Source: Scyliorhinus canicula (lineage: Eukaryota). From it: a stretch of DNA of 64,000 nucleotides. This document shows, piece after piece, positions 1,653 to 62,632 of this stretch; position 1 is the first letter of the stretch, and each line of letters begins with the position of its first letter. The translations under genes and the position numbers were made by a program. Under the pieces are notes generated by a model. The model was given only the letters and a program-made list of their open reading frames with translations. It was not told where the DNA came from and searched no databases. The stretch is taken from contig NW_024055453.1 of the NCBI RefSeq assembly GCF_902713615.1, forward strand, positions 124,001 to 188,000. The letters are read 5' to 3'.

Positions 1653-2812
1653 GAAAGCGCAGAGGTTCAGTGTGTTCTTCAGAGAGAGATAATGAGAGAG
1701 AGAAAAGTTTAGTGAATTTAGGCGCTCTGTGAAATAGAAAGGTTAAAGGAGAGAGTGTCAGAGAGAAAGATAGAGAGAGGTGGGAGGTATGTGGAATGAG
1801 TGAGTGTGAGAGTGGAGAGAAGTGAGAAACTGAGAGAGAAGGGAGATGCCTAGTGAATGAGAGACAGGAGAGCAGGTTCACATACCCGAGGATCACTGAG
1901 AATGATCAGAATAAGGAGATCACCCAGAAAACGGCCAATAGGAATCTTCAGCTGAGCACATCACTCATTCTTAAAGGAATAGTCGGGGCTCTGACACTGC
2001 TCAGCTCCCAGTTAAAGGGGCAGACACAGCTCCGCCCTTTTCTCTGTTATTTTTCTGATTGTTAAAGGCCCGTAGGGGTTAGGTTTATTTAAAAGGACAG
2101 AATGTGGGAAGCACACATCAATAAAACTGGGCATTCTTGGACACAGATTGCAGCTCCTTCTTTATCCAGGAATGAAACTGTTGTCTAATTGTCCCAGCAG
2201 TTAACAGCTGCTATTTTAACGCAGACTTGTTGTAAAGGAGCTTCTGTTCCGTGTCTAGGGGTTCTGAGATATGGAAGAGAGCGGCTGGACCACATTTCTT
2301 AGATGCCTCAGGATTAACCCACATGGGGACTTTGCTGTCAGTGAAGAGAGATGAGAAAGACCCAAGTGTTGTTTGTCCCTCTCAGTGTGACCCTGAAGGA
2401 CTGTGTCCAGGCTGAAGTTCTGTTCCTGCCGTGTGATCCTCCCCCAGATTGTCCTTTCTGAGCTCCAGACAGGTGATGTTCAGTTCGGAAAGACAAAAAT
2501 CTGCAACAACGTTTCAAACACATTTATTCAGAATAATAAACCTCATCAGCAGATTAAGACTGTCAGAGTGAACATTACTCAGTCCTGTACATGAGTAACA
2601 GCATCAATAAGGGTATAATCTAAACCTTGTGGTTTCTTGTGAACTCGCTGGTGTGTTAGCAGGTGGGATGACTGAGTAAATCCCTTCCCACAGACATTAC
2701 AGTTGAATAGCCGCTCCCCAGTGTGAATGCGATGGTGTTTCAGAAGATAAGATAAATGAGAAAATTCCTTCCCACATTTGGAGCAAGTGAACGGCCTCTC
2801 CCCACTGTGAAC

Positions 2813-3643
2813 TCACTGGTGTGTCAGCAGGTTGGATGACTGACTGAATCCCTTCCCACACACTGAGCAAGTGAACGGCCTCCCCTCATTGTGAACCTGC
2901 TGATGTGTCAGAAGATTGTATGAACGTGTGAATCCCTTCCCACATTCAGGACAGGTGAACGGTCTATCCCCTGTATGAAGTTGCTGGTGTATCAGAAGGT
3001 TGGATGAATTAATGAATCCTTTCCCACAGTCAGAGCAGCTGAATGGCCTCTCCCCAGTGTGAATTCTCTGGTGGTTCAGTAGGGCAGATGGACGGCTGAA
3101 TCCTTTCCCACACACCGAGCAGGTGAATGGCCTCTCCCCAGTGTGAGCATATTGGTGTGTTAGTAAATCCTTTTTGTTTTTAAAGCTCTTCTCACAGTCA
3201 GGACAGTTAAAAAATTTGTTATCAGAATGAACAAGTTGATGTGTCTGCAGGTGGGATGACTGAATGAATCCTTTCCCACACACGAAGCAGGAGAACGGTC
3301 TCTCTCCAGTGTGAATACGTTGATGTGTCAGCAGATCCTTTTTACATTTAAAACTCTTCTCACAGTCAGGACATGTAAATGGTCTCTTATCAGTGTGAAC
3401 AAGCTGATGAGTCACACTGTGGGATGACCGAGTAAATCCCTTCCCACACACAGGGCAGGTGAATGGTCTCTCCTCAGTGTGAACTCGCTGGTGTGTCAGA
3501 AGGTTGTATGAATGGGTGAATCCCTTCCCACAAATGGAGCAGATGAACTGTCTCTCACCAGTGTGACTGCGATGATGAACTTCCAGTTGTGATGGGTAAC
3601 TGAATCCCTTCCCACAATCCGCACATTTCCAAGGTTTCTCCAT
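2813..3643 (-). CDS. C2H2 zinc-finger protein, 9 complete fingers, cut by an in-frame TGA in finger 10
   Basis: MEKPWKC start (ATG 3643), TGERP linkers; frame continues past the TGA at 2813-2815 with two more fingers to 2579; AATAAA at 2523-2528 (-). Confidence 0.85.
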   Translation of the reverse strand: MEKPWKCADCGKGFSYPSQLEVHHRSHTGERQFICSICGKGFTHSYNLLTHQRVHTEERPFTCPVCGKGFTRSSHSVTHQLVHTDKRPFTCPDCEKSFKCKKDLLTHQRIHTGERPFSCFVCGKGFIQSSHLQTHQLVHSDNKFFNCPDCEKSFKNKKDLLTHQYAHTGERPFTCSVCGKGFSRPSALLNHQRIHTGERPFSCSDCGKGFINSSNLLIHQQLHTGDRPFTCPECGKGFTRSYNLLTHQQVHNEGRPFTCSVCGKGFSQSSNLLTHQ

Positions 3644-4299
3644 GGTGAGCGTGTCCTTATGTCTCTCCCACTTAAAGCCTTGTCGACACACGCAGCAGGA
3701 GTATAGTTTCTCCCTGCTGTGAATGGTGTGATTTTCTTTTAGGCTGTGTAACTAGTTCAAGCTCTTTCCACAGTCAGTGCAATGAAACACTCTCATTCGA
3801 GTGTGTGTGTGTCTCGGTGCTTTTCCAGTCACACTGATCTTTGACATTTTTTTCCTTAAACGGAAGAGACAAATATTTCTCCTTCCAGTTTCAAAGACTG
3901 ATGATATTCAGCTCCTGATTAATCGAGTGGCTGTCAGATATCGATGTGATATTTGGTTCTGTCGGCCAATCCTCCACTTCCAATATCCTGTAAAAGGACT
4001 TTACAAAAGTCATCACTGTCAGTCCAGGATAGAAATTCTGAACAGACAATTCTAGTTTTCTCTGGAACATCTTTTCCTCTCTTGTTCCTCCAAAGCTGTA
4101 AATCCCCGTCCCACACACTCTCCCTCCTCCCTGGGCTGAAATCCAAACCTATCTCACTATCTGCATCATTTCTTTCCTCCACTCCCAGTTTTCTCACTCC
4201 CTCTCTTCTGCCTGGGTTCAGTTCTCCAGCTCCTGTCTGCAGACTGACAATAAAACCAATGGGTCTTATTGGGGGGTTTGGGTTCTCACCATTGTCCCC

Positions 4300-4740
4300 G
4301 CTCGCGGCGGCTCTCATTCAGCTTTTGGGAGCCGCACTCACTCTCACTGCGGCTGCGCTCAGGCCGGAGCTGCACCGCGCATGCTCCGCACAGAGAGGAG
4401 ACTTCCGGGGGCGGGGCAACTGGCGCCTGCGCGTTCTGACTCCTGAGATGGAGATAGGGTGTATTCGATCACGCCGGGCATTCCGGGTAGCATTATCCGC
4501 CATTATTCCATTTTGTTCCTCAGGGTGATAAATTGGTTCCAGCACTTTTGATTACGTTCGTTGTTTGTACCGCATGTGCCAGCCGCATCGGTGTTTTTCT
4601 CTCTGATCGGCCCCTGTTAACGGCTGTCATCTGTTTCGTGGGCGATATGCCGCAGGGCGCCTGCGCGGCCGCCATCTTTCTCAGCGGAAATGTGCAGCAA
4701 GGCGCATGCGCGGGCATCCATGAACCGGAAGCCGGAGGAG
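4300..4740. promoter_or_regulatory. CpG-island promoter, probably bidirectional
   Basis: CpG-rich; GCGCATGC (NRF1-like), CCGGAAG (ETS), GGGGCGGGG (Sp), GCCGCCATCTT (YY1), GCATTCCGGGTAG (ZNF143-like). Confidence 0.7.
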
Positions 4741-4744
4741 AGAA

Positions 4745-4950
4745 TCTTGTTAATTTCTCTCCTGGACTGAGAGTGAAATTCCTTTAGAAACAGGAGGATT
4801 TGCCAACGGGAACTTCAAACCAAACATCACATCATCATCATCTGATTGAGTTACTCGATTCATCAGGACCTGAATATCATTGGGAGGTAAAATGGTTTGT
4901 CTGTTCTGTCTGAGGACAAAGATTTCAGATATCAGAGTGACTGGAAAACT
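4745..4950 (+). pseudogene. Remnant of a divergently oriented ZNF last exon (acceptor module plus dead finger)
   Basis: aatttctctcctggactgagagtga..., caaaccaaacatcacatc, tttgtctgttctgtc..., gtgactggaaaa match the 5' part of the other ZNF exons. Confidence 0.6.
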
Positions 4951-6190: not shown

Positions 6191-6233
6191 TAAAACAGTT
6201 CAGCTCAATCTTCTCAGATTAAAGAAGCTGAAG

Positions 6234-6306
6234 CGCCCAACGTGGGTCTTGCACCCACGGCCCTGGGATTAAGACTCCCATGCTCTACCGACTGAGCTAG
6301 CCGGGC
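6234..6306 (-). tRNA. tRNA-Lys(CTT), probably a pseudogene
   Basis: Reverse complement GCCCGGCTAGCTCAGTCGGTAGAGCATGGGAGTCTTAATCCCAGGGCCGTGGGTGCAAGACCCACGTTGGGCG; T-loop/B-box GTTCGAGC changed to GTGCAAGA, position 32 C>G. Confidence 0.85.
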
Positions 6307-8512: not shown

Positions 8513-8909
8513 CAGGGGCATAGTTTCCTGTCAATATTACTCTTGATGAAGCTCAGATCGAATTTGCTTTGCGAACTACTCTCTTAATATGTCTTGTAGA
8601 TATACAAAATCCCTCTTCACCTCTTTCTCTCTCCTCCCAAAGAGGTCAGTTGGGTTTTTGTGACAATCCAGCAGTTTTCTTGGTCACTTTTTCCCAGTGT
8701 CGGCCCCACAAATGACCAGATTCATTCAGCTCAATTTCACAACCTGCCTTTGTGTTTTTGTGGGTTCTCTCTCACTCTCTAATTTTTCTTTTTAATCAGT
8801 TTCACAGGGTGTTCGAAGGGGAGGCTTCAAAGTCCGAAAACTCAAATCAAGCATCACATCAGGATCTGACAGATTCCTCAATTTATCATTTCCTGAATAT
8901 CAGCAGATT

Positions 8910-9756
<847 letters not shown>

Positions 9757-14900: not shown

Positions 14901-15540
14901 TGATTGTATCGCTGATTTTGTTCTCGCTCTGCCCAGAACTGCATCCAGGCAGAGGCGAGGAAGTGGGGGGTAGGGTGGGGGATCTTGGAGTTGATGAAAT
15001 AAAGGGTGAGATGGGTTTGAATTCAGCCCAGGGAGGAGAGAATGTGTGCGGACAGGGATTTACAGCTTTTGGGGAAAAAAGACAGGAAAAATATTCCATA
15101 GAAACTAGACTTGGCTTTTCTGTGTTTCTGTGCTCCACACTTGTTGTGGAAAATTTTGTAATCTGCATTTCCAGGCTATTGGAAGGGGAGGATGACTGGA
15201 AGGAACATCATTGCAAGATCTGACAAGATTTATCCAGATCTGAATATTTTTTTAAGAAAGAAGGATCTGAATATCATTGGCCTTTGAATGTGGAAGGAGA
15301 AACGTTTGGTTGTTCTGTCCGTGGGAGAAGATTTCAAACACCAGTGTGTTTGGAAAAGAACCGACGCACGTACACCTGAGAGACAGTGTTCCAGTGAACT
15401 GACTGTGGAAAGAGCTTTAACCAGTTCACAGTCTCTAAAAAATCACACCATTCACAGTGAGGAGAAACTGTACATGTGTTCTCTGTTGATAAGATTTCAA
15501 TCGATCATCTAACCTGCAAAGACAGGAAGATACAGGCACC

Positions 15541-16017
15541 GTGGAGAAACTGTGGAAATGTGATGACTATGGGAAGGGATACAATTATCCATCCCGGCTG
15601 GAATACCATCGACGCTCTCACACTGGGGAGAAGCCGTGGAACTGTGGGGATTGTGGTAAACTATTCAATTCTCAATACCAGCTGGCAAACCATCAACGCA
15701 GTCATAGTGGGGAGAGGCCATTCACCTGTTCTCTGTGTGGGAAGGGATTTACCCAATCAGCCTGTCTCATGTCACACCAGCGAGTTCACACTGAGGAGAG
15801 GCCGTTCACCTGGTCTTCCTGTGGAAAGAGGTTCAGGCATTCGGGCAACCTCAAAGCACACCAGCGGGTTCACACAGGAGAGAGACCGTTCACCTGCTGC
15901 GTGTGTGGCAAAGGGTTCCATTGGCTATCCAGCCTGCTGACACATCAGCGAGTTCATAAACAACTGCAGGGGTTGGGTTCTGCTGTTATTTCTGCTGTTA
16001 ATCACATCCAGGATTGA
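15541..16017 (+). CDS. ZNF paralog A: ATG>GTG start, four fingers deleted, two fingers with Cys loss; possibly a pseudogene
   Basis: gtggagaaactgtggaaatgt versus atg in copy B; 335 bp shorter than copy B; ends [20 protein letters not shown]. Confidence 0.65.
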   Translation: MEKLWKCDDYGKGYNYPSRLEYHRRSHTGEKPWNCGDCGKLFNSQYQLANHQRSHSGERPFTCSLCGKGFTQSACLMSHQRVHTEERPFTWSSCGKRFRHSGNLKAHQRVHTGERPFTCCVCGKGFHWLSSLLTHQRVHKQLQGLGSAVISAVNHIQD

Positions 16018-16950: not shown

Positions 16951-17130
16951 CCTGCAGGAAGACATCAATAGACTGATCAGTGGGCCAGAAAAGTAGCAAA
17001 CTGAGGTCAATCCAGAGAAGCGTGGGATAATAAATACATTTGGGGAGGACAAACACGGCAAAGGGAAAGAATATGAATTGTATGACAGTGAGGTGTAGAG
17101 GGACAGAACGGCATTAGAGTGCATGTCTAC

Positions 17131-19510: not shown

Positions 19511-21950
19511 GTAAGTCAGCGGGAGATATTTGGCAGATAAAGTATAATTTGGGGAAAGAGTGAAGTTGTCCCATGTTGGGAATAATAATAATAATTTAAA
19601 TCGAGAGACTGCAGAATACCACAGTAGAGAAAGTTCTGTGTGTCCTTGTACATGGACCACAAGTGTATTTATTACCTCACACTCCTCCAGATTGATCTCC
19701 ATTTGCTTCTTTGCTGCCCAGCTGATCAGTCTACTGATATCTTCCTGTAGTCTCCAACTTTATTCCTCACTGTCAACCACAAGACTGCAAATGTTTCAAC
19801 CATGTCCCTTTGTTAAAGTCTAAATCATTCATATATAACACACAAAGCAGGGAATCTTGTCCTGAACAATTCAGAACTCCGCTTGAAACAGTCTTCTGAT
19901 CACAAAAATACCTCTGGACCAATCCCCTTTGCTTCCTGCTGCTCCAGCTGATGACATTCCAGCATAATGGAAGTGCCCTGGTTTTCCCACGTGGAACTGG
20001 ATGTGTATTCCACAGGGCTGGGATGTGCTGTCATGTCTTTATTTATTTCATTATTAACTGACTGAAGTAAATAAACTTCAGAATAAAACAAATATTCAGC
20101 AGATACGCACCAATCATTATCCTGAAGTCACCGTATTTTTATAGGAAGTTAACTGTTTGCCAAACCTCATTATCTAAATGCCTCAGATTTTTATTTACTG
20201 AAAAATTCAGATTAGGTCACTGTTCAGTCACTTGTTATTTAGCTTCCTCTTCACCCCTAGATTTGATTTATTAAACACAGACTGTAATTAAAAGATTAAT
20301 TTCAGTTTTAAGCTATTTAACGAATTTGGTTTTCATTTATAGTTGATTCCAGCAGTAACCAGAACTGTGTTCAGTCCTCTAGCTGTGCACGAACAAGTAT
20401 TTTATGAAGTTTTAACATTATCTCCCTGCTCTTATATTCTGGTCCTGCGACAAGAAAGGCAAGTGTCCCAAATGCCTTCTGGACCACCTGATCTACCTGT
20501 CCAGCCACCTTCAGGGATCTGTGGATATGTTCTCCAAGGTCTCTCTGTTTCCCAACACTTCTCAGCATCATCCCATTTATTGGTCATTATTGGTCATATG
20601 AATTATGTTTCTTTCTGTATGTTACAGTGCCACACTGAAATGCTTCGGAGAAATTTCGATCACATTACCACTTGCTGTGTTCCAGGCTACATTCAGACAT
20701 GTTAAATGTTGCATTTTAGCATTGGAACGCCCAAGGGAAATGCACGTTCCAATGCAGTATGTGAGACCACAGAGCTTTTGTTAGATTTAAACTCCCTGAC
20801 CACAAAATCTTGAAGAATAGTTGTACATATGTGGGTTAAGTACATATGCACAATTGCTTTCCAATTGGTTGTCGGGGTTCCAATGGGCAAATATTAACTG
20901 ATTGCACATATCCATGGTGGGTCATTTACCCAGCATTCCTGGCAATGGAGAAAGCCCCCTATCTACAATACAGGGGACCGGGATGCGTGCGCAGTCTCAC
21001 ACAGTTTGGAGCATGCACAGAGTGAGGGATGACGCTGAACAGAGGTTGGTTTGTTGCTCGGCCGCCGGTGAGAGGCGGCGGAGGGGAAGCGGCGGGTGGG
21101 TGGAGAGGGTTCATTAACACTCAGTGTGGGCCACAAACCCCGAATAACAACCTGCAGGTCCCGCGGTTCCAGCTCCCAGACTTTCCCCCGGAAATAGGCC
21201 CAGGTTAAAGGCCACCATCTTCATTCCGTGGCGAACATGGTGTCTGAGGGGCCATGGTGGTGACGCAGAGAGTGGGCGGGGCTTCTGGGTCCTAGTGACC
21301 AGGAGAGAAAATGATTGTATCGCTGATTTTGTTCTCGCTCTGCCCAGAACTGCATCCAGGCAGAGGCGAGGAAGTGGGGGGTAGGGTGGGGGATCTTGGA
21401 GTTGATGAAATAAAGGGTGAGATGGGTTTGAATTCAGCCCAGGGAGGAGAGAATGTGTGCGGGCAGGGATTTACAGCTTTTGGGGAAAAAAGACAGGAAA
21501 AATATTCCATAGAAACTAGACTTGGCTTTTCTGTGTTTCTGTGCTCCACACTTGTTGTGGAAAATTTTGTAATCTGCATTTCCAGGCTATTGGAAGGGGA
21601 GGATGACTGGAAGGAACATCATTGCAAGATCTGACAAGATTTATCCAGATCTGAATATTTTTTTAAGAAAGAAGGATCTGAATATCATTGGCCTTTGAAT
21701 GTGGAAGGAGAAACGTTTGGTTGTTCTGTCCGTGGGAGAAGATTTCAAACACCAGTGTGTTTGGAAATGAACCGACACACGTACACCTGAGAGACAGTGT
21801 TCCAGTGAACTGACTGTGGAAAGAGCTTTAACCAGTTCACAGTCTCTAAAAATCACACCATTCACAGTGAGGAGAAACTGTACATGTGTTCTCTGTTGAT
21901 AAGATTTCAATCGATCATCTAACCTGCAAAGACAGGAAGATACAGGCACC

Positions 21951-22762
21951 ATGGAGAAACTGTGGAAATGTGATGACTATGGGAAGGGATACAATTATCC
22001 ATCCCGGCTGGAATACCATCGACGCTCTCACACTGGGGAGAAGCCGTGGAACTGTGGGGATTGTGGTAAACTATTCAATTCTCAATACCAGCTGGCAAAC
22101 CATCAACGCAGTCATACTGGGGAGAGGCCATTCACCTGTTCTCTGTGTGGGAAGGGATTTACCCAGTCAGCCTGTCTCATGTCACACCAGCGATTTCACA
22201 CGGAGGAGAGGCCCTTCAGCTGCACCGACTGTGGAAAGAGGTTCAGGCATTCATCCCATTCAGTAAACACCAACGTGTTCACACAGGGGAGAGACTGTTC
22301 ACCTGTTCAGATTGTGGGAAGGGATTCACTCAGTCAGCCAACCTGGTGGTACACAAGCGAATTCATACTGGGGAAAGGCCATTTAGCTGCACTTCCTGTG
22401 GAAAGAGGTTAAGGTCGTCATCTGAACTCACTGAACATCAGCGAGTTCACACAGGGGAGAAACCATTCACTTGCTCTGTGTGCGGGAAGAGATTCGCTCA
22501 GTCATCCCACTGCCTGACACACCAGCGAGTTCACACTGAGGAGAGGCCGTTCACCTGCTCTTCCTGTGGAAAGAGGTTCAGGCATTCGGGCAACTTCAAA
22601 GCACACCAGCGGGTTCACACTGGAGAGAGACCGTTCACCTGCTGTGTGTGTGGCAAAGGGTTCCATTGGCTATCCAGCCTGCTGACACATCAGCGAGTTC
22701 ATAAACAACTGCAGGGGTTGGGTTCTGCAGTTATTTCTGCTGTTAATCACATCCAGGATTGA
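21951..22762 (+). pseudogene. ZNF paralog B, 9 fingers with a 1-bp frameshift in finger 4
   Basis: ATG intact; frame switches near 22260 (tcatcccattcagtaaacac) between ORFs 21951-22412 and 22145-22762; could be an assembly indel. Confidence 0.7.
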
Positions 22763-29667: not shown

Positions 29668-29995
29668 GGGCCACACGGTAGCACAGTGGTTCGCACTGTT
29701 GCTTCACAGCTCCAGGGGCCCAGGTTTGATTCCCGGTTTGGGTCACTGTCTGTGCGGAGTCTGCACGTTGTCCCAGTGTTTGTGTGGGTTTACTCCGGGT
29801 CTCCGGTTTCCACAGTCCAAAGATATGTAGATTAGGTGGATTGGCCATGCTAAATTGCAATTAAGTGTACAAAAAGGTGAGGTGGGGTTATGGATTAGGA
29901 TGGAGGTATGGGCTGAAGTCGGGAGCTTAAGTCCAAGGGCCGGTGCACTCGATGGGCCAAATGCCCTCCTTCTGAACTGTAAATTCTATGTTACT
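29668..29995 (+). mobile_element. HE1-type SINE inserted in the last ZNF linker
   Basis: cacggtagcacagtggttcgcactg head; tail ccttctgaactgtaaattctatg supplies the ORF stop. Confidence 0.85.
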
Positions 29996-31344
29996 GTTTC
30001 AGTGTGAACTCGCTGGTGTTTCAGCAAATTTGGTTTACTTTTAAATCTCTTTTCACAGTCAGAACATTTAAAAGGTTTCTGATCAATGTGAACAAGTTGG
30101 TGTCTAGTCAGGTGGGATGACTGAGTGAATTTCGTATCACACACGGGGCAAGTGTACGGTCTCTCCCCAGTGTGAACTCGCTGGTGTTTCAGAAGCTGGG
30201 ATGACCGAGTAAATCCCTTCCTACACACAGAGCAGGTGAACGGCCTCTCCCCAGTGTGAGCGCGTTGATGTAACAGCAAACAACTTTTACTTTTAAAGCT
30301 CTTCTCACAGTCAGAACATTTGAAAGGTCTCTGATCAGTGTGAACAAGTTGGTGTGTCATGAGATGAGATGACTGAGTGAATCCCTTCCCACACATGGAG
30401 CAGGTAAAAGGCCTCTCCCCAGTGTGAGTGCGTTGATGTGTCAGTAAATCATTTCTGCTTTTAAAGCTCTTCTCACAGTCAGCACATTTAAACAGTCTCT
30501 GATCAGAGTGGACCTGATGGTGAGTCTGGAGATTTGATGAAGCATTAAATCCCTTCCCACATTCCAGACAGGTGAACGGCCTCTCCCCAGTGTGAGTGCG
30601 TTGATGTCTCAGTAAATCCATTCTGCTTTTAAATCTCTTCTCACAGTCAGCACATATAAAAGGTCTCTGATCATTATGAACAAGTTGGTGTTTCAGAAGG
30701 TGGGAGGAACAAGTGAATCCCTTCCCACACACGGAGCAGGTGTACGGCCTCTCCCCAGTGTGAGTGCGTTGATGTATCAGTAAATCCTTTCTGCTTTTAA
30801 AGTCTTTCGCACAGTCAGCACATTTAAAAGGTCTCTGATCAGTGTGAACAAGTTGGTGTGTCAGGAGTTGTGATGACTGAGTGAATCCCTTCCCACACAC
30901 AGAGCAGATGAACGGCCTCTCCCCAGTGTGAGTGCGCTGATGTGTCAGTAAATTAATTCTGCTTTTAAAGCTCTTCTCACAGTCAGCACATTTGAAAGGT
31001 CTCTGATCAGTATGAACAAGTTGGTGTTTCAGGAGGTGTGATGACTGAGTGAATCCTTTCCCACATACAGAGCAGGTGAATGGCCTCTCCCCAGTGTGAG
31101 TGCGTTGATGTAACAGTAAATCATTTCTGCTTTTAAAGCTCTTCTCACAGTCAGCACATTTAAACGGTCTCTGATCAGTATGAACATGCTGGTGTGTAAT
31201 CAGATTGGATAGCTTAGTAAATCCCTTCCCACACACAAAGCAGGTGAATGGCCTTTCCCCAGTGTGAATACGTCGATGAGTTTCCAATTCAGACGGGTAA
31301 TTACATCTTATCTCACAGTCCCCACATTTCCACGGTTTCTCCAT
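29986..31344 (-). CDS. C2H2 zinc-finger protein, 16 fingers in alternating doublets
   Basis: Open 452-codon frame from MEKPWKC; alternating [11 protein letters not shown] and TDQRPFKCADC fingers. Confidence 0.9.
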   Translation of the reverse strand: MEKPWKCGDCEIRCNYPSELETHRRIHTGERPFTCFVCGKGFTKLSNLITHQHVHTDQRPFKCADCEKSFKSRNDLLLHQRTHTGERPFTCSVCGKGFTQSSHLLKHQLVHTDQRPFKCADCEKSFKSRINLLTHQRTHTGERPFICSVCGKGFTQSSQLLTHQLVHTDQRPFKCADCAKDFKSRKDLLIHQRTHTGERPYTCSVCGKGFTCSSHLLKHQLVHNDQRPFICADCEKRFKSRMDLLRHQRTHTGERPFTCLECGKGFNASSNLQTHHQVHSDQRLFKCADCEKSFKSRNDLLTHQRTHTGERPFTCSMCGKGFTQSSHLMTHQLVHTDQRPFKCSDCEKSFKSKSCLLLHQRAHTGERPFTCSVCRKGFTRSSQLLKHQRVHTGERPYTCPVCDTKFTQSSHLTRHQLVHIDQKPFKCSDCEKRFKSKPNLLKHQRVHTETVT

Positions 31345-32784
31345 AGTTATCGACAAGTTACCAGATACAGGTAGGATACAGATTTGACGTCACTGTCAGG
31401 TCAGCCGTGATGTTATTAAATGGTGGAACAGGCTCACGGGGCTGAATGTCCTATTGCTGCTTCTTGATTCTTATGGTGCGAATGTCCTTGTGTCTCTCCA
31501 ACTTGGATCATCAGTTGAAGCCTGAGTACCGTGTGTCCCTGATGTAAATGCTGCAATTTCTTTTCATGCTGTGTGATTGCTTAAAGCTCAGTTCCTGCTA
31601 ACTGTGGAAAATTACTTAGATGTCTGTGTCTCGGTGCTTTTCCAATCACAGCGATTTTTGAAATCTTTTCCGCAAAGACAAAACAGACAAATATTTCTCC
31701 TTCCACGTTGAAAGGCCGGTCCTGATGAATCAAGTGACTCTGGCAGATGTTGACATGATGTTTGCATCTGCAAATATTCTGTAAAAAGAGTTACATTGAA
31801 TTACTGTGAATATATAAACAGGCCATTCTGTCACAGATTCTGCTGCTGTCAATACTCAGCACACATCTCCAACTGTCCCCTGATCTTATCTCAGCCTTTC
31901 AGCTGATTTTCGATTCCATTTTCTCTCATGCGATTGTCCCGTTTCCTTATGAAAACATCTCAGCACTTTCTTCAGCTCATTTCCATGTAATGAATAACAC
32001 ATTCTAAATCTGTGATGAATACATTTGTCAGTATTGCCCCCTTTGATTTATTCGTAACTATCTTGTATTTATGACTCAATGTTTATTCCTTGTTTGCGAT
32101 AGAAAAAATGCCCATTTATTCCTTCCTGAGAGCTGTAATCTGTCGTTTTACAAAAGTTATCAGTCACTCGAGGACAGAAATCGCAACGGGACAAACCTTT
32201 CTGTTGGATTGAGTTTGTTGAGTGTAAATTCTCTCCTTCTAACCCCCTGTAAAAGGAGTTCACAAAAGCCATCACTGTCAGTCCAGGATAGAAATTCTGA
32301 ATAGGCAATTCAAGTTTCTCTGAAACATTTTCTCCTCTCTTGTTCCCCCAAATCTGTAAATCCCCGTCCCACACACTCTCCCTCCTCCCTGGGCTGAAAT
32401 CCAAACCCATCTCACCATCTCTTTCCTCCATGTTTTCTCCCTCCCTCTCCTCTGCCTGGGTTCAGTTCTCCAGCTCCTGTCTGCAGACTGACAATAAAAT
32501 CAATGGGTCTTATTGGGGGTTTGGGGCCTCCAGCGGGTGTTTGTGAATCCTCCCCGCCCACCTGCCAGGGTTTCCTTCCTTGGCAGAGAACAGAGTCCTC
32601 ATTGATTTGAGTGCAAAGTGTCAGCTCTTATATATTATCCCCCTCCCCCATCCTGTGATGGGAACCACCCTCCAGTGTGTGAAGCAGGATGGTGCCCGTT
32701 AACCTGGGCCTGTTCCCGGGAGGGAGGGAGAAGCTCTGCAGCTGCAAACCAGGGAGCTGACAATGATGGTGAAGGGTTTGCTCC

Positions 32785-40240: not shown

Positions 40241-40254
40241 AATCCCTTCACTCA

Positions 40255-41205
40255 CTAAGAGCAGGTGAACGGTCTCTCCCCAGTGTGAACTCGCTGATGT
40301 TTCTGCAAACTGGATAAAGCACGGAATCTCTGTCCACACTGAGAGCAGGTGAATGGCCTCTCCCCAGTGTGAACTCGCTGGTGTGTCTGCAGATTGAATA
40401 ATTGTGTGAACCCCTTCCCACACTGAGAGCAGGTAAATGGCCTCTCGCCAGTGTGAACTCGCTGATGTCTCCGCAGACTGGATAAATCACTGAACCCCTT
40501 CCCACACTGAGAGCAGGTGAATGGCCTCTCTCCACTGTGGACTCGCTGGTGTGTCTGCAGACTGGATAACCAAGTGAATCCCTGCCCACACTGAGAGCAG
40601 ATGAATGGCCTCTCCCCAGTGTGAACTCGCTGGTGTCTCAGCAGATTGGATAAATCATTGAATCCCTTCCCACACTGAGAGCAGGTGAATGGCCTCTCCT
40701 CAGTGTGAACTCGCTGATGTCTCCGCAGACTGGATAAGTCACTGAATCCCTTCCCACACTGAGAGCAGGTGAATGGCCTCTCTCCAGTGTGAATTCGCTG
40801 GTGTGTCCGCAGATTGGATGAATCAATGAATCCCTTCCCACACTGAGAGCAGGTGAATGGCTTCTCCCCAGTGTGAGTTCGCTGGTGTGTCTGCAGATTG
40901 AATAATTGTGTGAATCCCTTCCCACACTGAGAGCAGGTGAATGGCCTCTCCCCAGTGTGAACTCGCTGGTGTGACTGCAGACTGGATAACTGTGTGAATC
41001 CCTTCCCACACTGAGAGCAGGTAAATGGTTTCTCCCCAGTGTGAACTCGCTGGTGTGCCTGAAGGTTAGATAACTGAGTGAATCCTTTCCCACATTTAGA
41101 GCATGTGAACGGCCTCTCCCCAGTGTGAATGCGTTGATGAATCTCTAGCTTAGACGGGACTCTGAATCCCTTCCCACAGTCCCCACATTTCCACGGTTTC
41201 TCCAT
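40255..41205 (-). CDS. C2H2 zinc-finger protein, 11 homogenised fingers, 3' truncated
   Basis: MEKPWKC start; near-identical [11 protein letters not shown] repeats; finger 12 ends in TAG at the LINE junction. Confidence 0.88.
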
Positions 41206-42177
41206 GTTTTAGGTCTCCTCGTGTCTCTCCAGATTGGACAATCAGTGGAAGCCTTGTCTACACACAGAACATGTGCACTGTCTCTCCTCACTGTGAATGG
41301 TGTGATGTTTTTTCAGACTGTGTATCTGGTTGAAGCTCTTTCCACAGTCAATTCACTGGAACTCTCTCATTCGGGTGTGTGTTGTGTGGGTCTCGGTGCT
41401 TTTCCAGTCACACTCATATTTAAAATCTTCTGAAGCCGATAGATCGGACAAACATTTCTCCTTCTCGCCGATGATATTCAGAGCCCGATGATATTCAGAT
41501 CAGAAGGAATCGAATTAGTTTGTCACATCACGTCATGATGTTTGAGATTATGTCTATAATTCCAGCTCTTCCAATATCCTTTAAAAACAATTAACAAAAG
41601 TTATCATTGTTCGTACAGGATAGAAATTCAGAACAGACAATTCTAGTTCCTATGGAATATTATTTCCCCTCTCGTTCTCCAAAAGCTGTAAATATCCATC
41701 CCACACAATCTCCCTCCATTCTCACTCTGCTGTATTTAATATTCACCCTCCCAATTCTCCTAAAGGTGCTGATTCATGTTGATTGACAGATCCAAGCTCA
41801 GCTCACTGCTTCCTGACCAGGACACAGAGATTAGAATAGGAGCAGGAGTAGGCCATTCAGCCCACCGATTCTGCTCAACCATTCAATGAGATCCTTGGCC
41901 GATCTACCTCAACACTATTTTCCCACACAATCCCCATATCCCTCAATATCTTCAACATCTAGAAACCTATCAATATTTGTCTTGAACATACTTGATGACT
42001 GAGGCTCCACATTCTTCTGGGACAGAGAATTCGAAAGCTTCACAACTTCCTGAGTGAAGAAATCCCTCCTCATCTCAGCTTTCTCTATTTTCCTGCCTGA
42101 ACCCCATAACCCTTAACTCCATTGTCCATCAAATATCTGTCGAACCCGTGTTTGAATATAATCAATGACCCCCAGAC

Positions 42178-45237: not shown

Positions 45238-45299
45238 TTGTTCTGCGTACAATCCAGACAGATCATTCCTTAAATGAAAAACAGAGGATATACAACAGA

Positions 45300-50300: not shown

Positions 50301-52627
50301 AAAAAAAGAATAATCCTTATCATCACAAGTAGGCATACATTAACACTGCAATGAAGTTACTGTGAAAATCCCCTATCGCCACATTTCAGCGCCTGTTGGG
50401 GTACACAGAGCGTGAATTCAGAATGTCCAAATTACCTAACAGCACATCTTCACACTCTGCACAGACAGTGACCCAAGCCAAGAATCGAACCTAGGACCCT
50501 GACGCTGTGAAGCAACAGTGTTAATCACTGTGCTACCGTAGATTGGCCAAGCTTAATTACTCCTTAATGTCCAGGGATGTGCAGGTTAGGTTCTTGGTTA
50601 TGGGGGATAAGGCGGATGGATGAGAGAATGTAAATGGGTAGAGCGCTCATTCAAAGGGTTGGTGCAGACTCAATGGGCCGAATGGCCTCCTTCTGCACTG
50701 TTCGGGTACACAGAGGGAGAATTCAGAATGTCCAACTCTCCTAACAGCATGTCTTTTGGGATGTGTTGAAGGAGGTGATTGTTTTGGGAGGTATTTGTTT
50801 CCCTACGTTCAGAATGAAGCCAACCATCAATCTACATTAGCCTTTGAGTCCCAACGTCTTATTGTTGAAGCAGAGCAGGAAAAGAAGAGAAAGACGTTCT
50901 GCTTTTCAGTTCTCACTACCTCTTGGGCTATTCTCCTCCATGTGTCCAAAGATCTACGACTGTGTCGAGTCACATGAAGAACCTGTCAAATCTCTCAACC
51001 TACCCTGAGTAAACATCATCCTCGAATAGAGGGACTGCTGATGACATGGAGGGGCAAAGTGTAGCAGGGAGTATGAGCGTTCATCCTGGACCAGGGAGCA
51101 GGAGGAGAGAATGTTGTGAATTTCTATCCTGGACTGCCAGTGATTAATTTTGGAAAATCCTTTTACAGGGGGTTAGAAAGGGAGGATTTACACAAAGCAA
51201 ACTCAAGCCAAGAATAGGTTTACTTTTTTCCTGAATTTCTTGTTTGGACTGACAAAGATGGCTTTTGTAACTTTCATTTTCAGGGTATTAGAAAAGGATT
51301 TGCAGGCAGGAAACACAAGCGAATCCTGACATCGAACTCCTGCAGCATCACTCAATTCATCAGGACCTGGATATTATTGCACTTTCAGTGTAAGCATTGA
51401 GTTCCAAGTCATTACCACTCACTGTAAAATTTCTGCCTCATATCACCCTGTAGATCTTGCTCCAAATCTTAAATCTGTGTCCTGAAATCCTTTTGCAATC
51501 AACTGGAAGGAGCAACGTTTCTTTAACTACTTTACAGAGATCAATCAGAAACTTGTACCTAAATCAATCTCCTTTCTTCCAAGGAGAACAACCGCAGTTT
51601 CTCCAACCTAACATTGCAACTAAAATCCCTCATTCCTGGAACTATTCTGGTAAGTCTCCCCTGCACTCTCTCAAGGACCGTCACATCCTCCATAATATGT
51701 GGTTTGCACAGATCCAGATGTTCTGTCTTCCTGTCTGTGATGTCATCACGCACCGACACTTGCACGGTGACATCACCCCCTGATATTTCCTCAACTAGGA
51801 ACCTTTTCCTCCGACTCCAGAGTTGCTGATATCTATCCAGCTGCAGGCTACAGTGGGACATTTTAATATTGAAAACAATGAAACTGCTTCACAGCTCAGT
51901 ATTTCTGAGCATTTATCAACAATTTTGAGCTTTTAGTGCTCTGCTGTGTTACCTGTGAGGGATTCCATGTCTCTGGAGCTGGTGTGACTCTCAAAAAACA
52001 ATGCAAAACGCCCGTGGAGGGTGAGGGCTACCAGCTTTCGACATATAAAATCCCTTCTTTATCTCTCTCGCTCGCTCTCCCTCCCTCAGAAAACTCAACC
52101 AAGATTCACTTCAAAATCTGACAGTCACTCAGTTCATGAGGACCTAAATGTAAGTGTTTCTGTTTGACCTGTGGTTAAAGATTTAAACATCTGTGCAGCT
52201 GAAAATAGGATAGAGCAAGATTTGCAAACAAGGATGGGAATGTTCCATTGAGATACTGCTTAACCAGGGCCCAATGTAGGTCAATGAGCACAGGGGTGAT
52301 GGGTAAGTGAGTGGGACTCAACTTTGGCAGATTCCCTTCCCTGAAGGACATTCGTGAACCAGTTGGGTTTTTACAACAATCCAGCAGTTTTCGTGGTCAC
52401 TTTTTCTTCGTGCCGGCCCCACAAATGACCAGATTCATTCAGCTCAATTTCACAACTTGCCTTTGTGTTTTTGTGGTTTCTCTCACTCCCTTTATTCTGT
52501 TTCAAATCAATTTCACAGGGTGTTAGAAGAGGAGGATTTGCAGTCAGGAAACTTTAATCGAAAATGATATCAGAATCTGATGGAGACGGCCAATTTATTG
52601 TAACCTAAACATCATCGTAATTTGAAC

Positions 52628-53329
52628 ATGGAAGAAAAAAGCACCGATCACAGTGGGGGGAAACCGTTGATGTGTTCTGTGTATGGACAAGACTTCAGCC
52701 AATCATCTGGCCTTTTGGAACATAATTGCAGTCAGGACAGGGAGATGCCATGGAAATGTGGGGACTGTGAGAAGGGATTCAATTACCCATCCCAGCTAGA
52801 AACTCATCGACGCAGCCACACTGGGGAGAGGCCATTCACCTGCTCTCAGTGTGGGAAGGGATTTACTCACACATCCACTCTGCTGAGACACCAGCGACTT
52901 CACACTCAGGAGAGGCCATTCACCTGCTCTCAGTGTGGGTTGGAATTCAATCGGTCATCCAACCTAGCATTACACCAACGGGTTCACACTGGGGAGAAGC
53001 CGTTCATCTGCTCCCAGTGTGGGAAGAGATTTGCTCACTCATACACCCTGCGGACACACGAGCGAGTTCACACTCTGGAGAGGCCATTCACCTGCTCCCA
53101 GTGTGGGAAGGGATTCACTCATTCAGCCAATCTGCTGAGACACCAACGAGTTCACACTGGGGAGAGACCGTTCACCTGCTCCCAGTGTGGGAAGGGATTC
53201 ACTCAATCATCCCACCTACTTGCACATCGGTATATTCACACTGGGGAGAGGCCATTCACCTGCTCCCTGTGTGGGAAGGGATTCAGTCAGTCATCCAACC
53301 TGCTGAAACACCAGCGAATTCATAAGTAA
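52628..53329 (+). CDS. C2H2 zinc-finger protein, 7 fingers plus one degenerate N-terminal finger
   Basis: Open frame from ATG 52628; acceptor tttcacag/G at ~52518. Confidence 0.88.
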
Positions 53330-53449
53330 CTGTTGTGATTGGAATTTGCTGGTGATCATATTCAGGACTGAACCATGTCCATCTGAGTCTGTTTCTGCTT
53401 AATTGAAAAATAACTCCAGCTCAGTTATAGGTGTTAATATAGTTGGTCT

Positions 53450-54170
53450 TTGAAAGAGAGGATTTGCAGTTAGGAAACACAAACCAAACATCATATCAGC
53501 ATCTAACACTTACCGAATTTATCGGAAACTGAATCAGATTTTGAACATAGCAGGAAAAAGCACCGTTCACAGTGGAGAGGAACCGCACGTGTCCTGTGTG
53601 TGGACAAGGCTTCAGCCAATCATCTAGCCTGCCAGTATATAAATGCAGTCACACTGGGAGAAACCATGGAAATGGCGAGACTGTGGGAAGGGATTTGATT
53701 ACCCATCCAAGTTGAAAATCCATCAGTGCACTCACACTGGGAGAGACCGTTCACCTGCTCCCAGTGTGGGAAAGGGCTGACACACTCACACCACTTGCAG
53801 CCACACCAACATTTCTCGCTGGAGAGAGGCTGTTCACCTGCTTCCACTGTGAGAAGGGATTTGCACATTCCTCCAATCTGCTGAGACATCAGTGAGTTCA
53901 CACTGGGGAGAGACCATTTAAATATCCAGACTGTGAGGAGTTTTAAAACAATTCTGGATAACTGATGTCCCCTTAACATGTTCACGCTGTAGAACTGGGT
54001 TCAGACTATCTTCTCGCCTCACTACAGCTGTGAGTTCACACAGGGGAGAAGCCGTTCACCTGCTCCGAGTGTCCGAGGGGATTCACTCGGTTATCCAAAC
54101 TGCTGATGCACCAGCAAGTTCACAAGTGACTTCAGTGATTGGATTTTTATGGTAATCACATCCTGGACTG
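53450..54170 (+). pseudogene. Decayed tandem copy of a ZNF last exon
   Basis: gagaaaccatggaaatgg.., several ggagagaccgttcacctgc linkers with stops and frameshifts, tail cacatcctggactga. Confidence 0.8.
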
Positions 54171-55874: not shown

Positions 55875-56620
55875 GCCACTGCCACAATCTCCATGTTTCC
55901 ATGGTATCTCCATGGAGTCAGTGTCTTTGTGCCTCTCCTCTTTTGACAATCAGTTGAAGCTCGGCCACACACAAAACACATGGATGGTTTCTCCCGGCAG
56001 TGAATGGTGTGATCTTTCCTTCAGGCTGTGTAACAGGTTAAAGCTCTTTCCACAGTCAGTTCACTGGAACTCTCTCACTCGGGTGTGTGTTGTATAGGTC
56101 TCGGTGCTTTTCCAGTCACAGTGATGTTTCCACAGTCAGTTCACTGGAACACACTCGCTTGGGTGCGTGTCTGTCTCGGTGATTTTCCAGTCACATTGAT
56201 GTTTCTACAGTCATTTCACTGGGACACTCTCACTCGGGTGTGTGTTGTGTGGGTCTCGGTGCTTTTCCAGTCACACTGATGTTTCCACAGTCAGTTCACT
56301 GGGACACTCTCACTCGGGTGCGCGTCTGTTTCAGTGTTTTTCCAGTCATGCTGATGCTTGAATATTTTCCCACAAAGGAAACTTTCTCATTCCACATTCA
56401 TAGTCTGAGGATATTCAGGTCCTGATTAACCGAATTACATTGTCGGTGCTTGATGTGATATTTGATTTGTGTTTCCAGTCTGAAAGTCCTCTCCTAATGC
56501 CCTGTAACTGAAATTCAGAGCAGACAATTCCAGTTTCTGGGTAACATTTTTCCTCTCTTCTTTCCCCAAAGCTGTAAATCCCTGTCCCGCACACTCCTCC
56601 CTCCTCCCTGGGGCTGAAAT
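55875..56620 (-). pseudogene. ZNF remnant: 5' modules, amplified dead finger, MEIPWKHGDCG, then truncated by an L2 fragment
   Basis: Matches 3650-4150 and 41200-41710. Confidence 0.75.
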
Positions 56621-61118: not shown

Positions 61119-62041
61119 ATACCAAGAGGCAATTTAACATGGCAAATCCACCTAACCTTCAAATCTTTGAACTGTGGGAGGAAACCCACACAGACAGGGG
61201 AGAACGTACAAACTCCACACATCAAGTCAACGAAGATCAGAATCGAACCTGTGTCCCTGGCACTGTGAAGCAGCAGTGCTAACCACTATGCTACAGTGCA
61301 GCCCTCAAGGAGGCCACTTGGCCTATCGATCTCTTTGAGGGCAGCCACAGTGGTGTACTGCTGCCTCACAGCACCAGGAACCCGGGTTCAGTTCTATCCT
61401 TGGGCCAGGGACATACATCTGTCTGGCAGCCTGCATGATAGGAAGCTGTGAGCATAGATTTGTCAATCAGCCTGAATCAGAACCATCAGTAGAATTTGGA
61501 AGATGATTATCAGGTACAGCAGAATGAGAATGGAGGGAGAATGTGTTGGATGAAGATTTATAGCTTTTCAGTACACGAGTGAGGAAACAAATTTCACATC
61601 AACTAGAATTGTCTGTTCTGAATTTCTATCTTGTACTGGCAGTAATGACACTTGTAAATTCCTTTCACAGGATAATGGAAGGAGAGAATTTATGGAGGAA
61701 ACCAAACGCAAGTTGAGATCTGACCGAGTCACTCAGTTCATACTAACCTGAATATCATTGGCTTTTGAATCTAGAAGGAGATATGTTTGCCTATTCCTCC
61801 TGCTTCAAAAGATTTTAAAAATCAGTGTGACTGCCAAAGCACCGGGATACACAGACACACAGACACCCAATTTAGCGGGTTCCATTGTACAAACTGTGGA
61901 AAGAGCTTTAAACACTAACACAGTCTGAAAAAGACATTGCGCCACTCACAAAGCGGGGAGGGATCGTACTGTGTTCTATGTATTTGTGGACAAGGCTTCA
62001 AATCATCTTTCAACTGGGAGAGAGGCAGGGGCATCTGGAGC

Positions 62042-62632
62042 ATGGCGAAACCGTGGAAATGTGGAGAATGTGAGAGGGGATTTATTTGCCCGTCCCAGCT
62101 GGAAATCCATCGGCGTCGCCATACCGGGGAGAGGCCATTCACCTGCCCTGATTGTGGGCAGGCATTCACTGAATCATCTACGCTGCGGAGACATCTCCGA
62201 GTTCACACCGGGGAGAGGCCGTTCACCTGCTCCGATTGTGGGAAGAGATTCGCTGATTCGTCTACCCTGCTGAAACATGAGCGTGTTCACACTGGGGAGA
62301 GGCCGTTCCTCTGCTCAGTGTGTGAAAAGGGATTTAATCAGTCATCCGCCCTGCGGAAACACCAGCGAATTCACACCGGGGAGAGGCCATTCACCTGCTC
62401 TCAGTGTGAGAAGGGATTCAGTGATTCATCTAACCTGCAAAAGCACCAGCGAATTCACACTGGGGAAAGGCCGTTCACCTGCTCTGCCTGTGGGAAGGGA
62501 TTCAGTCGTTCGTCCACCCTGCTGTCACACCAACGACTTCACACCGGGGAGAGACCATTCATCTGCTCTGACTGTGAGAAGGGATTCACTCAGTCATCCA
62601 CACTCAAGAAACACCAGCAAATTCACAAATGA
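62042..62632 (+). CDS. C2H2 zinc-finger protein, 7 intact fingers
   Basis: MAKPWKC start, canonical TGERP linkers; acceptor ctttcacag/G at ~61670. Confidence 0.9.
   Translation: MAKPWKCGECERGFICPSQLEIHRRRHTGERPFTCPDCGQAFTESSTLRRHLRVHTGERPFTCSDCGKRFADSSTLLKHERVHTGERPFLCSVCEKGFNQSSALRKHQRIHTGERPFTCSQCEKGFSDSSNLQKHQRIHTGERPFTCSACGKGFSRSSTLLSHQRLHTGERPFICSDCEKGFTQSSTLKKHQQIHK

Follow-up and report, generated by a model that had tools for sequence, protein, structure and literature searches.

The 64-kb window, by which we mean the whole stretch of DNA that was analysed, contains arrays of C2H2 zinc fingers on both strands, located in a LINE-rich cluster (Table 1). A map made with a regular expression shows 72 stop-free C2H2 fingers, 8 leaders and 64 others. 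The arrays are built from repeated C-x2-C-x12-H-x3-H units with TGE(K/R)P linkers and match the Pfam families zf-C2H2 and zf-H2C2_2 with E values of 1e-45 to 1e-99, which places them in the C2H2 (Krueppel-type) class. All eight arrays and two relics share an architecture in which a constant finger (W/Y-K-C..C..F.YPS.LE.H.R.H), here called the leader, is the first or second finger. The eight fingers quoted in a preliminary description of this DNA were all present in the sequence where it had placed them. The leader HMM that it had proposed as a check separated the eight leaders, which scored 92-101 bits in the nucleotide version, from ordinary fingers (<49 bits) and added Unit I, and Unit J was obtained with a pre-leader HMM.

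Table 1. Positions of the zinc finger units and associated features within the 64-kb window
Feature	Position	Strand	Remarks
Unit A	2639..3987	-	subfamily 2; exon start 3987 after ccttttacag
Unit A leader	3563-3631	-	Trp codon 3631; ATG 3643
CpG island	4201..4900	.	GC 0.54; CpG observed/expected 0.86 vs window mean 0.44
Unit B	8808..9750	+	subfamily 1; pseudogene; exon start 8808
Unit B leader	9009-9077	+	Trp codon 9009
Unit C	15175..16017	+	short array
Unit C leader	15553-15621	+	Trp codon 15553; Cys2 lost (CDDY)
Unit D	21586..22762	+	segmental duplicate of Unit C, 99.3% identity
Unit D leader	21963-22031	+	Trp codon 21963; ATG 21951; Cys2 lost (CDDY)
Unit E	29986..31778	-	apparently intact; 16 fingers; stop 29986-29988
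Unit E leader	31264-31332	-	Trp codon 31332; ATG 31344; Cys for core Phe
Unit F	40255..41578	-	11 fingers; abrupt array end inside finger at 40255
Unit F leader	41125-41193	-	Trp codon 41193; ATG 41205
Candidate Unit G upstream mini-exon	51284..51389	+	copy of pre-finger stretch; own acceptor (tttcattttcag), GTAAGC donor
Unit G	52519..53329	+	subfamily 1; apparently intact; 7 fingers; stop 53327
Unit G leader	52751-52819	+	Trp codon 52751; ATG (MEEKS) 52628
Unit I	53448..54123	+	dead ninth copy; two finger relics after decayed leader; found with leader HMM
Unit I decayed leader	53657-53754	+	reads WKWRDCGKGFDYPSKLKIH; 74 bits (nucleotide leader HMM)
Unit J	55919..56545	-	truncated tenth copy; detected with pre-leader HMM
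Unit H	61671..62632	+	apparently intact; 7 fingers
Unit H leader	62054-62122	+	Trp codon 62054; ATG (MAKPWKC) 62042

The units had been described as coding paralogs, and this applies to some of them only. Units E, G and H are apparently intact. Unit E is open for 448 codons from the Trp codon and its array is composed of 168-nt two-finger units. Unit H is identical in 140 of 142 residues (99%) to a Scyliorhinus canicula RefSeq protein with the same start Met, the RefSeq model having a spliced non-finger tail at its end. Finger -1 of Unit G is degenerate, with Cys2 and the last His gone. In Unit A, fingers -3 to -1 are decayed and an in-frame stop (2813-2815) closes the frame after 272 codons and 9 canonical fingers, with two further fingers following the stop down to 2639. 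Units B and D are frameshifted: Unit B shows a MEGKS-type start, a partly deleted finger -1 and an array disrupted by frameshifts and stops, and Unit D a frameshift within its array. Unit C has no ATG and presents a GTG at position -4 instead. In Unit F, a stop lies one codon ahead of NMEKP and therefore translation can begin only at the ATG at 41205. The leader of Unit I kept YPS and lost Cys1 and Glu+5, and Unit J consists of a pre-leader region with 80-nt tandem repeats followed by MEIPWKHGDCGSG, after which homology ends.

The leader consensus is WKCxDCGKGFxYPSxLExHRRSH, and W(a-2), K(a-1), P(+1), S(+2), L(+4), E(+5) and R(+9) are present in 8/8 leaders, including the Trp before Cys1, the Pro-Ser and the Glu+5 previously reported as fixed. 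The signature PS.LE occurs in all eight leaders and in none of the 64 remaining fingers of the window that are free of stops (Fisher P = 8e-11). It appeared twice among 796 fingers of 120 generic ZNF matches, and the two matches concerned, one Scyliorhinus protein and one EukProt entry, both carry the constant finger. Later fingers in the window vary at DNA-contact positions, as had been noted, with 2.9-3.0 bits of variability at -1, +3 and +6. With Tandem Repeats Finder, each repeat array begins at or within ~15 nt of the leader end, indicating that at the array edge the leader forms an essentially unrepeated sequence. When Unit H was modelled with AlphaFold2, seven strand-strand-helix units were obtained and the leader had the same fold and pLDDT (75-82) as the other fingers. 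Its linker to finger 2 is the canonical TGERPF. According to the model, the leader is predicted to be an ordinary beta-beta-alpha finger with a canonical linker, as in DNA-docked fingers, and because of this resemblance its structure gives no specific pointer to protein binding. The leader residues Y(-1), S(+2) and T/I/V(+6) have little capacity for base reading, which is compatible with a non-DNA role as well as with a low-specificity DNA role. As the leaders of Units C and D are without Cys2 and that of Unit E is without the core Phe, an intact leader seems dispensable for keeping the open reading frame. A sequence search of the PDB returned generic fingers only, among them a ZFP568 chain whose first finger has TPSQL.

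Among the window paralogs, leader plus linker displayed a dN of 0.20, a dS of 0.84 and an omega of 0.24, values that derive from 34 codons and from non-independent pairwise comparisons. Among intact copies the leader omega was 0.08-0.32, and in adjacent decayed fingers omega ranged from 0.2 to 1.2. At P+1, S+2, L+4, E+5 and R+9, 7 synonymous and 0 replacement changes were counted (P = 2.4e-4), and at leader positions -2, +3, +6, +8 and +10 the 5 synonymous and 15 replacement changes fit neutrality. These results support that the leader is constrained beyond adjacent sequence, as the preliminary description had anticipated, at residues outside the latter positions. Gene conversion as the source of the constancy is rejected in view of the dS of 0.84, and a nucleotide-level element such as a start context or a regulatory site is rejected because synonymous sites vary freely. 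Passive inheritance would require that the leader, without any special role, remained constant as unique sequence at the array edge, beyond the reach of unequal crossing-over, and through slow shark evolution. The repeat array borders would fit this explanation, as would a leader nucleotide identity (74%) little above that of neighbouring decayed fingers (70%) and the fact that upstream sequence, though decayed, can still be recognised from one genus to another. However, the paralog dS represents ample time, in which no replacement occurred at P, S, L, E and R9, dead Unit I did mutate Cys1 and Glu+5, and the signature persists in sharks and batoids, so that we consider passive inheritance distinctly unlikely. 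In the arrays of Units A, E, F, G and H the framework omega was 0.07-0.36 and the contact-residue omega 0.46-1.86, a pattern in which they resemble ZNF arrays that function.

A conserved 3' splice site is located 200-450 nt 5' of the leader, and its acceptor (pyrimidine tract and AG) is kept in Units A, C, D, E, F and H, implying the existence of upstream exons. The acceptor is followed by a pre-finger stretch and then by 1-3 homologous fingers that are decayed by stops or frameshifts. The earlier claim that every coding paralog starts with the leader is correct for the open reading frames, but in the DNA these decayed fingers precede it. In 7/8 units, translation from the conserved acceptor in the leader frame would meet a stop before it reached the leader. 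In Units A, D, E, F and H, the sole in-frame ATG lies four codons before the Trp, and RefSeq/Gnomon models starting with M(E/A)KPWKC exist in S. canicula, Cetorhinus, Pristiophorus and Mustelus; start codon and 5' exons are deduced here from sequence and from such automatic gene models. A further constant finger, CSVCGxGFSxSSGL..HK.SH, is intact in proteins of Cetorhinus, Carcharodon, Stegostoma and Mustelus and decayed in the window. Judging from these sequences, the leader is not the ancestral N-terminus, and the ancestral exon carried the pre-finger stretch together with one additional constant finger or more. An all-against-all comparison of the 7 kb upstream of each unit yielded mostly dispersed repeats and no common upstream coding exon. 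For the candidate mini-exon of Unit G, the junction position agrees with Cetorhinus and S. canicula protein models.

The acidic pre-finger stretch (..EGEDLQ..SSGPEYH..) was considered as a missing effector, which is not supported in the window as most copies carry stops. The same DNA is read in two frames by different models, as VFEGEDLQ.. or as GVRRGGFKV... In the S. torazame relative P0140, an acidic N-terminus of 230 residues is in frame with an intact pre-finger stretch, suggesting that an N-terminal module may exist in part of the family. If the functional form needed both the pre-finger stretch and finger -1, which are broken here, all window units would be dead and their open arrays relics. 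Every copy indeed has stops or frameshifts 5' of the leader, there is clear damage in Units B, C, D, I and J, Unit F ends within a finger, and finger -1 is intact in other species. Still, such an interpretation is very improbable in view of the 448 open codons of Unit E, of the low omega values for framework (0.07-0.36) and leader (0.08-0.32) among Units A, E, F, G and H, and of the models starting with MEKPWKC or MAKPWKC that are annotated in four genera.

When the six-frame translation of the window was searched with a local KRAB HMM, for which the positive control yielded 28 KRAB proteins, nothing was detected (best E 0.74), and a single BTB query had no match in the same translation (best E 2.7), in agreement with the previous remark that no KRAB or BTB exon is visible. 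The Pfam families KRAB (PF01352), SCAN and BTB are not listed for any retrieved elasmobranch relative. With no KRAB exon and with an in-frame stop between acceptor and leader in 7/8 units, the units fall outside the KRAB-ZNFs, and the reading frames of Units A, D, E, F and H, which end in a stop behind the last finger or inside the array, display a fingers-only (OZF-like) architecture. This supports the view that the window units would encode fingers only, without a known effector domain, KRAB and BTB being the domains searched. The term effector-less, coined beforehand, is consistent with the leader-frame stops, the ATG at -4 and the lack of a KRAB or BTB exon. When a profile of the pre-finger stretch was run with HMMER, 43 representatives were obtained among 1.84 billion proteins; ten of them were checked, all from sharks, and had no common N-terminal domain.

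Relatives were gathered by region-restricted searches, as the whole-protein query gave chiefly generic ZNFs. In 25 proteins the constant finger comes first or second in the order of fingers (third in one EukProt entry), and the named carriers together with a Leucoraja locus represent 12 genera, nine of them shark genera and the others Mobula, Rhinoraja and Leucoraja. Of the carrier proteins, 23/25 have P+1 and 22/25 have E+5; these frequencies are upper bounds because, for every protein, the finger that matched the motif best was chosen. The constant finger was seen in sharks, rays and skates only, in a set without chimaera sequence, and the range formerly given as chondrichthyan is too wide. 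A gene that is conserved from Mobula to Stegostoma, with its entire array fixed, has a version of the constant finger in second place, in which Tyr replaces Trp. The family is large and old, common to sharks and batoids.

On balance, the window is probably a birth-and-death cluster of at least ten units belonging to an old elasmobranch family of fingers-only C2H2 zinc finger proteins. Each unit is a terminal exon that opens with the conserved 3' splice site and continues with the pre-finger stretch, untranslatable here, and 1-3 decayed N-terminal fingers. The constant finger comes next, followed by a tandem array that grows and diversifies through duplications within it. Here the constant finger would be the first module to be translated, with the Met four codons ahead of the Trp, and selection fixes W, K, Y(-1), P(+1), S(+2), E(+5) and R(+9) while -2, +3, +6, +8 and +10 drift. 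Beyond the anatomy, the constraint and the taxonomic spread, which the sequences show, we infer that the variable fingers read DNA and that the constant finger, in the same register, docks at the 3' end of the site, where it would serve as an N-terminal cap or anchor that is invariant and of low specificity. A constant surface for a partner may be an additional feature of this finger.

It is established as an idea that a C2H2 finger can be conserved for a purpose different from reading bases, for example in the C-terminal dimerisation fingers of Ikaros, and protein-binding C2H2 fingers usually have non-canonical linkers and stand apart from the DNA-binding array. Compared by description with Ikaros-type fingers, the leader is different as it is contiguous with the array via a canonical linker. 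Dedicated protein-binding C2H2 fingers are reportedly the subject of a review by Brayer and Segal from 2008, which is cited in PMC8455134. The constant finger could be thought of as a protein-interaction module for a co-repressor or for dimerisation, which would replace KRAB in an elasmobranch transposon-silencing ZNF system targeted by the variable array. The constrained residues W, K, Y-1, P+1, S+2 and E+5 are mostly outside the classical base-reading set and +3 and +6 drift, the LINE-rich cluster contains framework-constrained, contact-variable arrays like those of KZFP and FiNZ families (PMC10547256), and the fingers-only human proteins ZNF146 and ZNF507 bind LINE-1 (PMC8896011). The canonical fold and the TGERPF linker to finger 2, typical of DNA-docked fingers, argue against such a module, as do the fact that the constant finger was not the ancestral N-terminus and the resemblance of the Mobula–Stegostoma gene with its fixed array to an ordinary DNA-binding factor; the proposal has a modest chance of being right. 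An invariant DNA-docking cap is at least as likely as cofactor recruitment or dimerisation. Smaller still is the chance that the constant finger is a module dedicated to recruiting a partner or to dimerising; elasmobranchs would then have a ZNF silencing system directed at transposons that is independent of KRAB and uses a zinc finger as its effector.

The KRAB-ZNFs of tetrapods and the FiNZ-ZNFs of cyprinids serve to silence transposons. No description of a counterpart in cartilaginous fishes was found in the literature. Like KRAB-ZNF clusters of tetrapods, the window contains clustered, tandem-duplicated poly-C2H2 genes with TGEKP-type linkers, many pseudogenes, interspersed LINE fragments, a constrained framework and variable contacts. 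In contrast to them, no KRAB A-box is present in the window or in retrieved relatives, the constant N-terminal element is a zinc finger, and the start of the open reading frames lies four codons ahead of this element. FiNZ-ZNFs of cyprinids are likewise a lineage-specific, KRAB-less expansion with a short conserved N-terminal sequence before a variable array (PMC10547256). However, FiNZ is a 28-residue, Glu-rich, non-finger peptide of cyprinids only (PMC10547256), whereas the element in the window is a complete C2H2 finger found in elasmobranchs, a distinction drawn by description and taxon. The acidic pre-finger stretch might resemble FiNZ, but it carries stops in the cluster and is read in two frames. 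Human ZNF146/OZF and ZNF507, fingers-only proteins that bind LINE-1 sequences (PMC8896011), are similar to the window units in having C2H2 fingers and no other recognisable domain. Unlike the large, fast-duplicating family in the window, they are single conserved mammalian genes for which no constant leader finger has been described.

The family evolves like a KZFP family, yet without a known effector, and a finger that is constant across shark and batoid lineages provides a concrete experimental handle. Even if the constant finger were a DNA cap only, the family would still show how fingers-only proteins are built and maintained. CpG islands at 4.2-4.9 kb and 43.9-45.3 kb are candidate sites of transcription start. 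The first of them lies between the head-to-head Units A and B and is a candidate for a promoter shared by both.

A six-frame scan of the window revealed 72 C2H2 fingers in eight arrays (units A to H), and in the resulting finger map all eight arrays open with the constant leader finger (WKC..YPSxLExH) where the preliminary description had placed it. Seven leader residues are invariant among the eight copies, W(a-2) and K(a-1) just before Cys1 and P(+1), S(+2), L(+4), E(+5) and R(+9), and there is variation at +3 and +6. The 64 remaining stop-free fingers of the window reach an entropy of 2.9-3.0 bits at -1, +3 and +6. The motif PS.LE is present in 8/8 leaders versus 0/64 other stop-free fingers (Fisher P = 8e-11), and it was encountered twice in 796 fingers of 120 generic ZNF hits, both times in proteins with a leader-type finger, one from Scyliorhinus and the other a EukProt entry of unknown species. 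When a nucleotide HMM was built from the leader, all eight copies scored 92-101 bits, ordinary fingers stayed below 49 bits, and a ninth, decayed leader (relic I) was detected at 53657-53754(+) with the sequence WKWRDCGKGFDYPSKLKIH. A tenth, truncated copy, unit J, was found at 55919-56545(-) with an HMM of the pre-leader region. Within unit J (56047-56348(-)), an 80-nt piece of the region of finger -3, the third decayed finger 5' of the leader, is present in 3.5 tandem copies.

Across seven independent copies, the 34 codons of leader plus linker displayed a mean dN of 0.20, a mean dS of 0.84 and an omega of 0.24, with values of 0.08-0.32 among A, E, F, G and H and of 0.18-0.65 for pairs including the broken B or C. 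For the decayed neighbouring fingers omega ranged from 0.2 to 1.2. As nucleotide identity is similar (70% for the decayed neighbours versus 74% for the leader) and omega differs, the contrast lies in the placement of changes and not in their number. At P+1, S+2, L+4, E+5 and R+9 no replacement change has occurred beside at least 7 synonymous ones (P = 2.4e-4 under neutrality), whereas positions -2, +3, +6, +8 and +10 accumulated 5 synonymous and 15 replacement changes, matching the expectation for no constraint. For this window, omega and the changes at the five fixed positions thus bear out the claim that the leader is constrained. In the dead copy I, Cys1 and Glu+5 are replaced. Recent gene conversion as the cause of leader constancy is excluded by the dS of 0.84, and a nucleotide-level element is excluded because synonymous sites are free to vary. 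Omega in the arrays of units A, E, F, G and H was 0.07-0.36 for framework codons and 0.46-1.86 for contact codons, the pattern of working poly-ZNF genes.

Analysis with Tandem Repeats Finder indicates that in every array the repeats start at the leader end or within about 15 nt of it. A 168-nt unit of two fingers, in which two finger types alternate, is repeated 6.6 times in the E array (30168-31278(-)), with 84% matches. In the F array (40241-41129(-)), 10.6 copies of an 84-nt unit share 86% identity, so this array has grown recently through internal duplication. Units C and D (15092-16017 and 21503-22412) belong to a segmental duplication of recent origin, about 6.41 kb in period. The two units share 99.3% identity over a stretch that takes in at least 1.4 kb of upstream DNA and reaches into the leader; beyond it their arrays diverge, with a frameshift in D. 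Two CpG-rich blocks, at 16950-17705 and 23695-24450, share 97.9% identity.

Alignment of the DNA upstream of A, C, D, E, F and H showed collinear homology over about 650 nt, including a conserved pyrimidine tract and AG (ccttttacag/G in A, tttcacag/G in H, and AAG in F). The table lists where the exon begins after this acceptor in each unit, together with other features.

Positions of predicted splice features and CpG islands in the window
Feature	Unit	Position	Strand	Remark
First exon base after acceptor	A	3987	(-)	
First exon base after acceptor	B	8808		
First exon base after acceptor	C	15175		
First exon base after acceptor	D	21586		
First exon base after acceptor	E	31778	(-)	
First exon base after acceptor	F	41578	(-)	
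First exon base after acceptor	G	52519		
First exon base after acceptor	H	61671		
106-nt pre-finger copy	G	51284-51389		own acceptor and GTAAGC donor; 1.1 kb upstream of G terminal exon
CpG island	A/B	4201-4900		between head-to-head pair
CpG island	F/G	43901-45300		between head-to-head pair
CpG island	F/G	49901-50300		between head-to-head pair
CpG island	E	32801-34000		upstream of E

The acceptor is followed by a pre-finger stretch and then by remnants of up to three fingers (..C.FCGK.FK.., ..C.DCGKSFNQ.HSLKKH..IHSGEK.. and ..CSVCGQGF..SS.LERH..), which carry stops, frameshifts or deletions in all copies. B, G and relic I constitute a second subfamily with a single upstream finger and an MEGKS-type start. 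In 7/8 units a stop closes the leader frame within the exon, 5-49 codons 5' of the leader Trp, and in A, D, E, F and H the sole in-frame ATG lies four codons 5' of this Trp (MEKPWKC or MAKPWKC); unit C has GTG at that position. An upstream coding exon therefore cannot join in frame via the acceptor in those units. The 106-nt pre-finger copy upstream of G possesses splice sites, and its junction agrees with the one implied by Cetorhinus and S. canicula models, so the genes are multi-exonic at the 5' end; their extra 5' exons are untranslatable in the window.

An effector-less state is supported for the units of this window: Pfam searches of ORFs returned zinc-finger families only, and neither a BTB query nor a locally built KRAB HMM, which recovered 28 KRAB proteins among fetched tetrapod hits, matched the six-frame translation. 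A profile of the pre-finger stretch collected 43 representatives among 1.84 billion proteins, and 10/10 of those looked up were from sharks. N-terminal of the stretch the matched proteins had nothing in common, several being intron-like DNA read through. Automatic gene models read the pre-finger DNA in two frames (VFEGEDLQ..SSGPEYH versus a different peptide), and stops interrupt it in the window, several of them at a single codon which elsewhere encodes Arg, His or Cys; the stretch is therefore not taken to be a demonstrated domain. Both readings, each a putative peptide (8808-8920, 52519-52630; proteins P0088, P0124, P0170), occur in more than one shark order, one being VFEGEDLQ..NSNQTS.QDL. 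In one S. torazame protein the stretch is in frame behind a 230-residue acidic N-terminus, so some family members may possess an N-terminal module.

Region-restricted searches retrieved relatives from elasmobranchs only, besides generic ZNFs; unit H and an S. canicula RefSeq protein starting MAKPWKC are identical at 140/142 positions, so the window belongs to this catshark or to a species very closely related to it. In 25 proteins a leader-type finger ranks first or second among the canonical fingers (third in one EukProt entry of unknown species); the genera are the sharks Scyliorhinus, Mustelus, Cetorhinus, Carcharodon, Stegostoma, Rhincodon, Heterodontus, Pristiophorus and Heptranchias and the batoids Mobula and Rhinoraja; at a Leucoraja locus the first array finger is YECDVCGKAWQKPSQLETH. 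With the best motif match taken per protein at any finger rank, upper bounds for residue frequencies were 23/25 for P+1, 24/25 for L+4, 22/25 for E+5, 20/25 for R+9, 19/25 for S+2, 18/25 for W and 17/25 for Y-1. Models of Cetorhinus, Pristiophorus and Mustelus also start with MEKPWKC. The preceding finger, where intact, is fairly constant too (Y.C.VCG.GFS.SSGL..HK.SH in Cetorhinus, Carcharodon, Stegostoma, Mustelus and Rhincodon), which argues that the ancestral constant region was longer than the leader alone. A gene conserved between Mobula and Stegostoma (P0141, P0143; also P0064) opens its array with GRSSNLARHRRSH and then NYPSELETH as the first two fingers; the remainder of the array is nearly identical between ray and shark. 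The leader finger type probably predates the family expansion, and the Mobula/Stegostoma gene may be the progenitor of the expanded family or a domesticated member. The proteins retrieved in these shallow searches included none from a chimaera or bony fish that bears the signature. The published literature searched describes no shark ZNF family, and cartilaginous fishes are unmentioned in Wells et al. 2023 (PMC10547256). The constant-finger family is apparently an undescribed variant of the well-known lineage-specific poly-ZNF expansions, and its leader offers a clear handle for experiments.

In a single-sequence AlphaFold2 model of H (mean pLDDT 81), the leader matches the other six fingers both in its strand-strand-helix unit and in confidence. 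In 7/8 copies TGERPF or TGEKP links it to finger 2, and in C2H2-DNA complexes the canonical linker accompanies joint docking of adjacent fingers in the major groove. The residues at -1 and +2 (fixed Y and S) and at +6 (T/I/V) read bases weakly, and an extra Arg at +8 (leader HRRSH versus array HQRxH) together with Lys a-1 could add backbone contacts. Given this fold, linker and residue set, the preferred reading is that the leader would serve as an invariant, low-specificity N-terminal DNA cap fixing the register of the variable fingers. It might also offer a constant partner-binding surface, which could coexist with the cap. The cofactor, dimerisation and transposon-control roles proposed in the preliminary description are hypotheses, and ordinary DNA docking is at least as likely; the hypothetical transposon link draws on the LINE-rich setting and on likeness to KZFP, FiNZ and ZNF146.

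A(-)/B(+) and F(-)/G(+) are head-to-head pairs. CpG observed/expected is 0.8-1.0 in the islands versus a window mean of 0.44. A block of 120-275 nt is common to the regions upstream of B (7214-7488) and G (49728-50002), and upstream of E it occurs as an inverted pair (32788-32904 / 33184-33306); islands and blocks may represent promoters or first exons. Among the ZNF units lie fragments of LINE reverse transcriptase (Pfam RVT_1), at 42178-43413(+), 45953-46774(+), 36713-37396(-) and 11813-13490(-). In the Mustelus model P0137 a family array is joined to a similar RT tail, a fusion that is probably an annotation artefact. A tRNA-Lys(CTT) above the Rfam gathering score and a tRNA-Phe-like sequence with anticodon AAA, called by ARAGORN alone (6233-6306(-), 35859-35939(-)), may be genes or SINE heads. 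At the window edge, a GC-rich 67-nt tandem repeat (172-379; three copies, 87% identity) lies within a 133-codon ORF.
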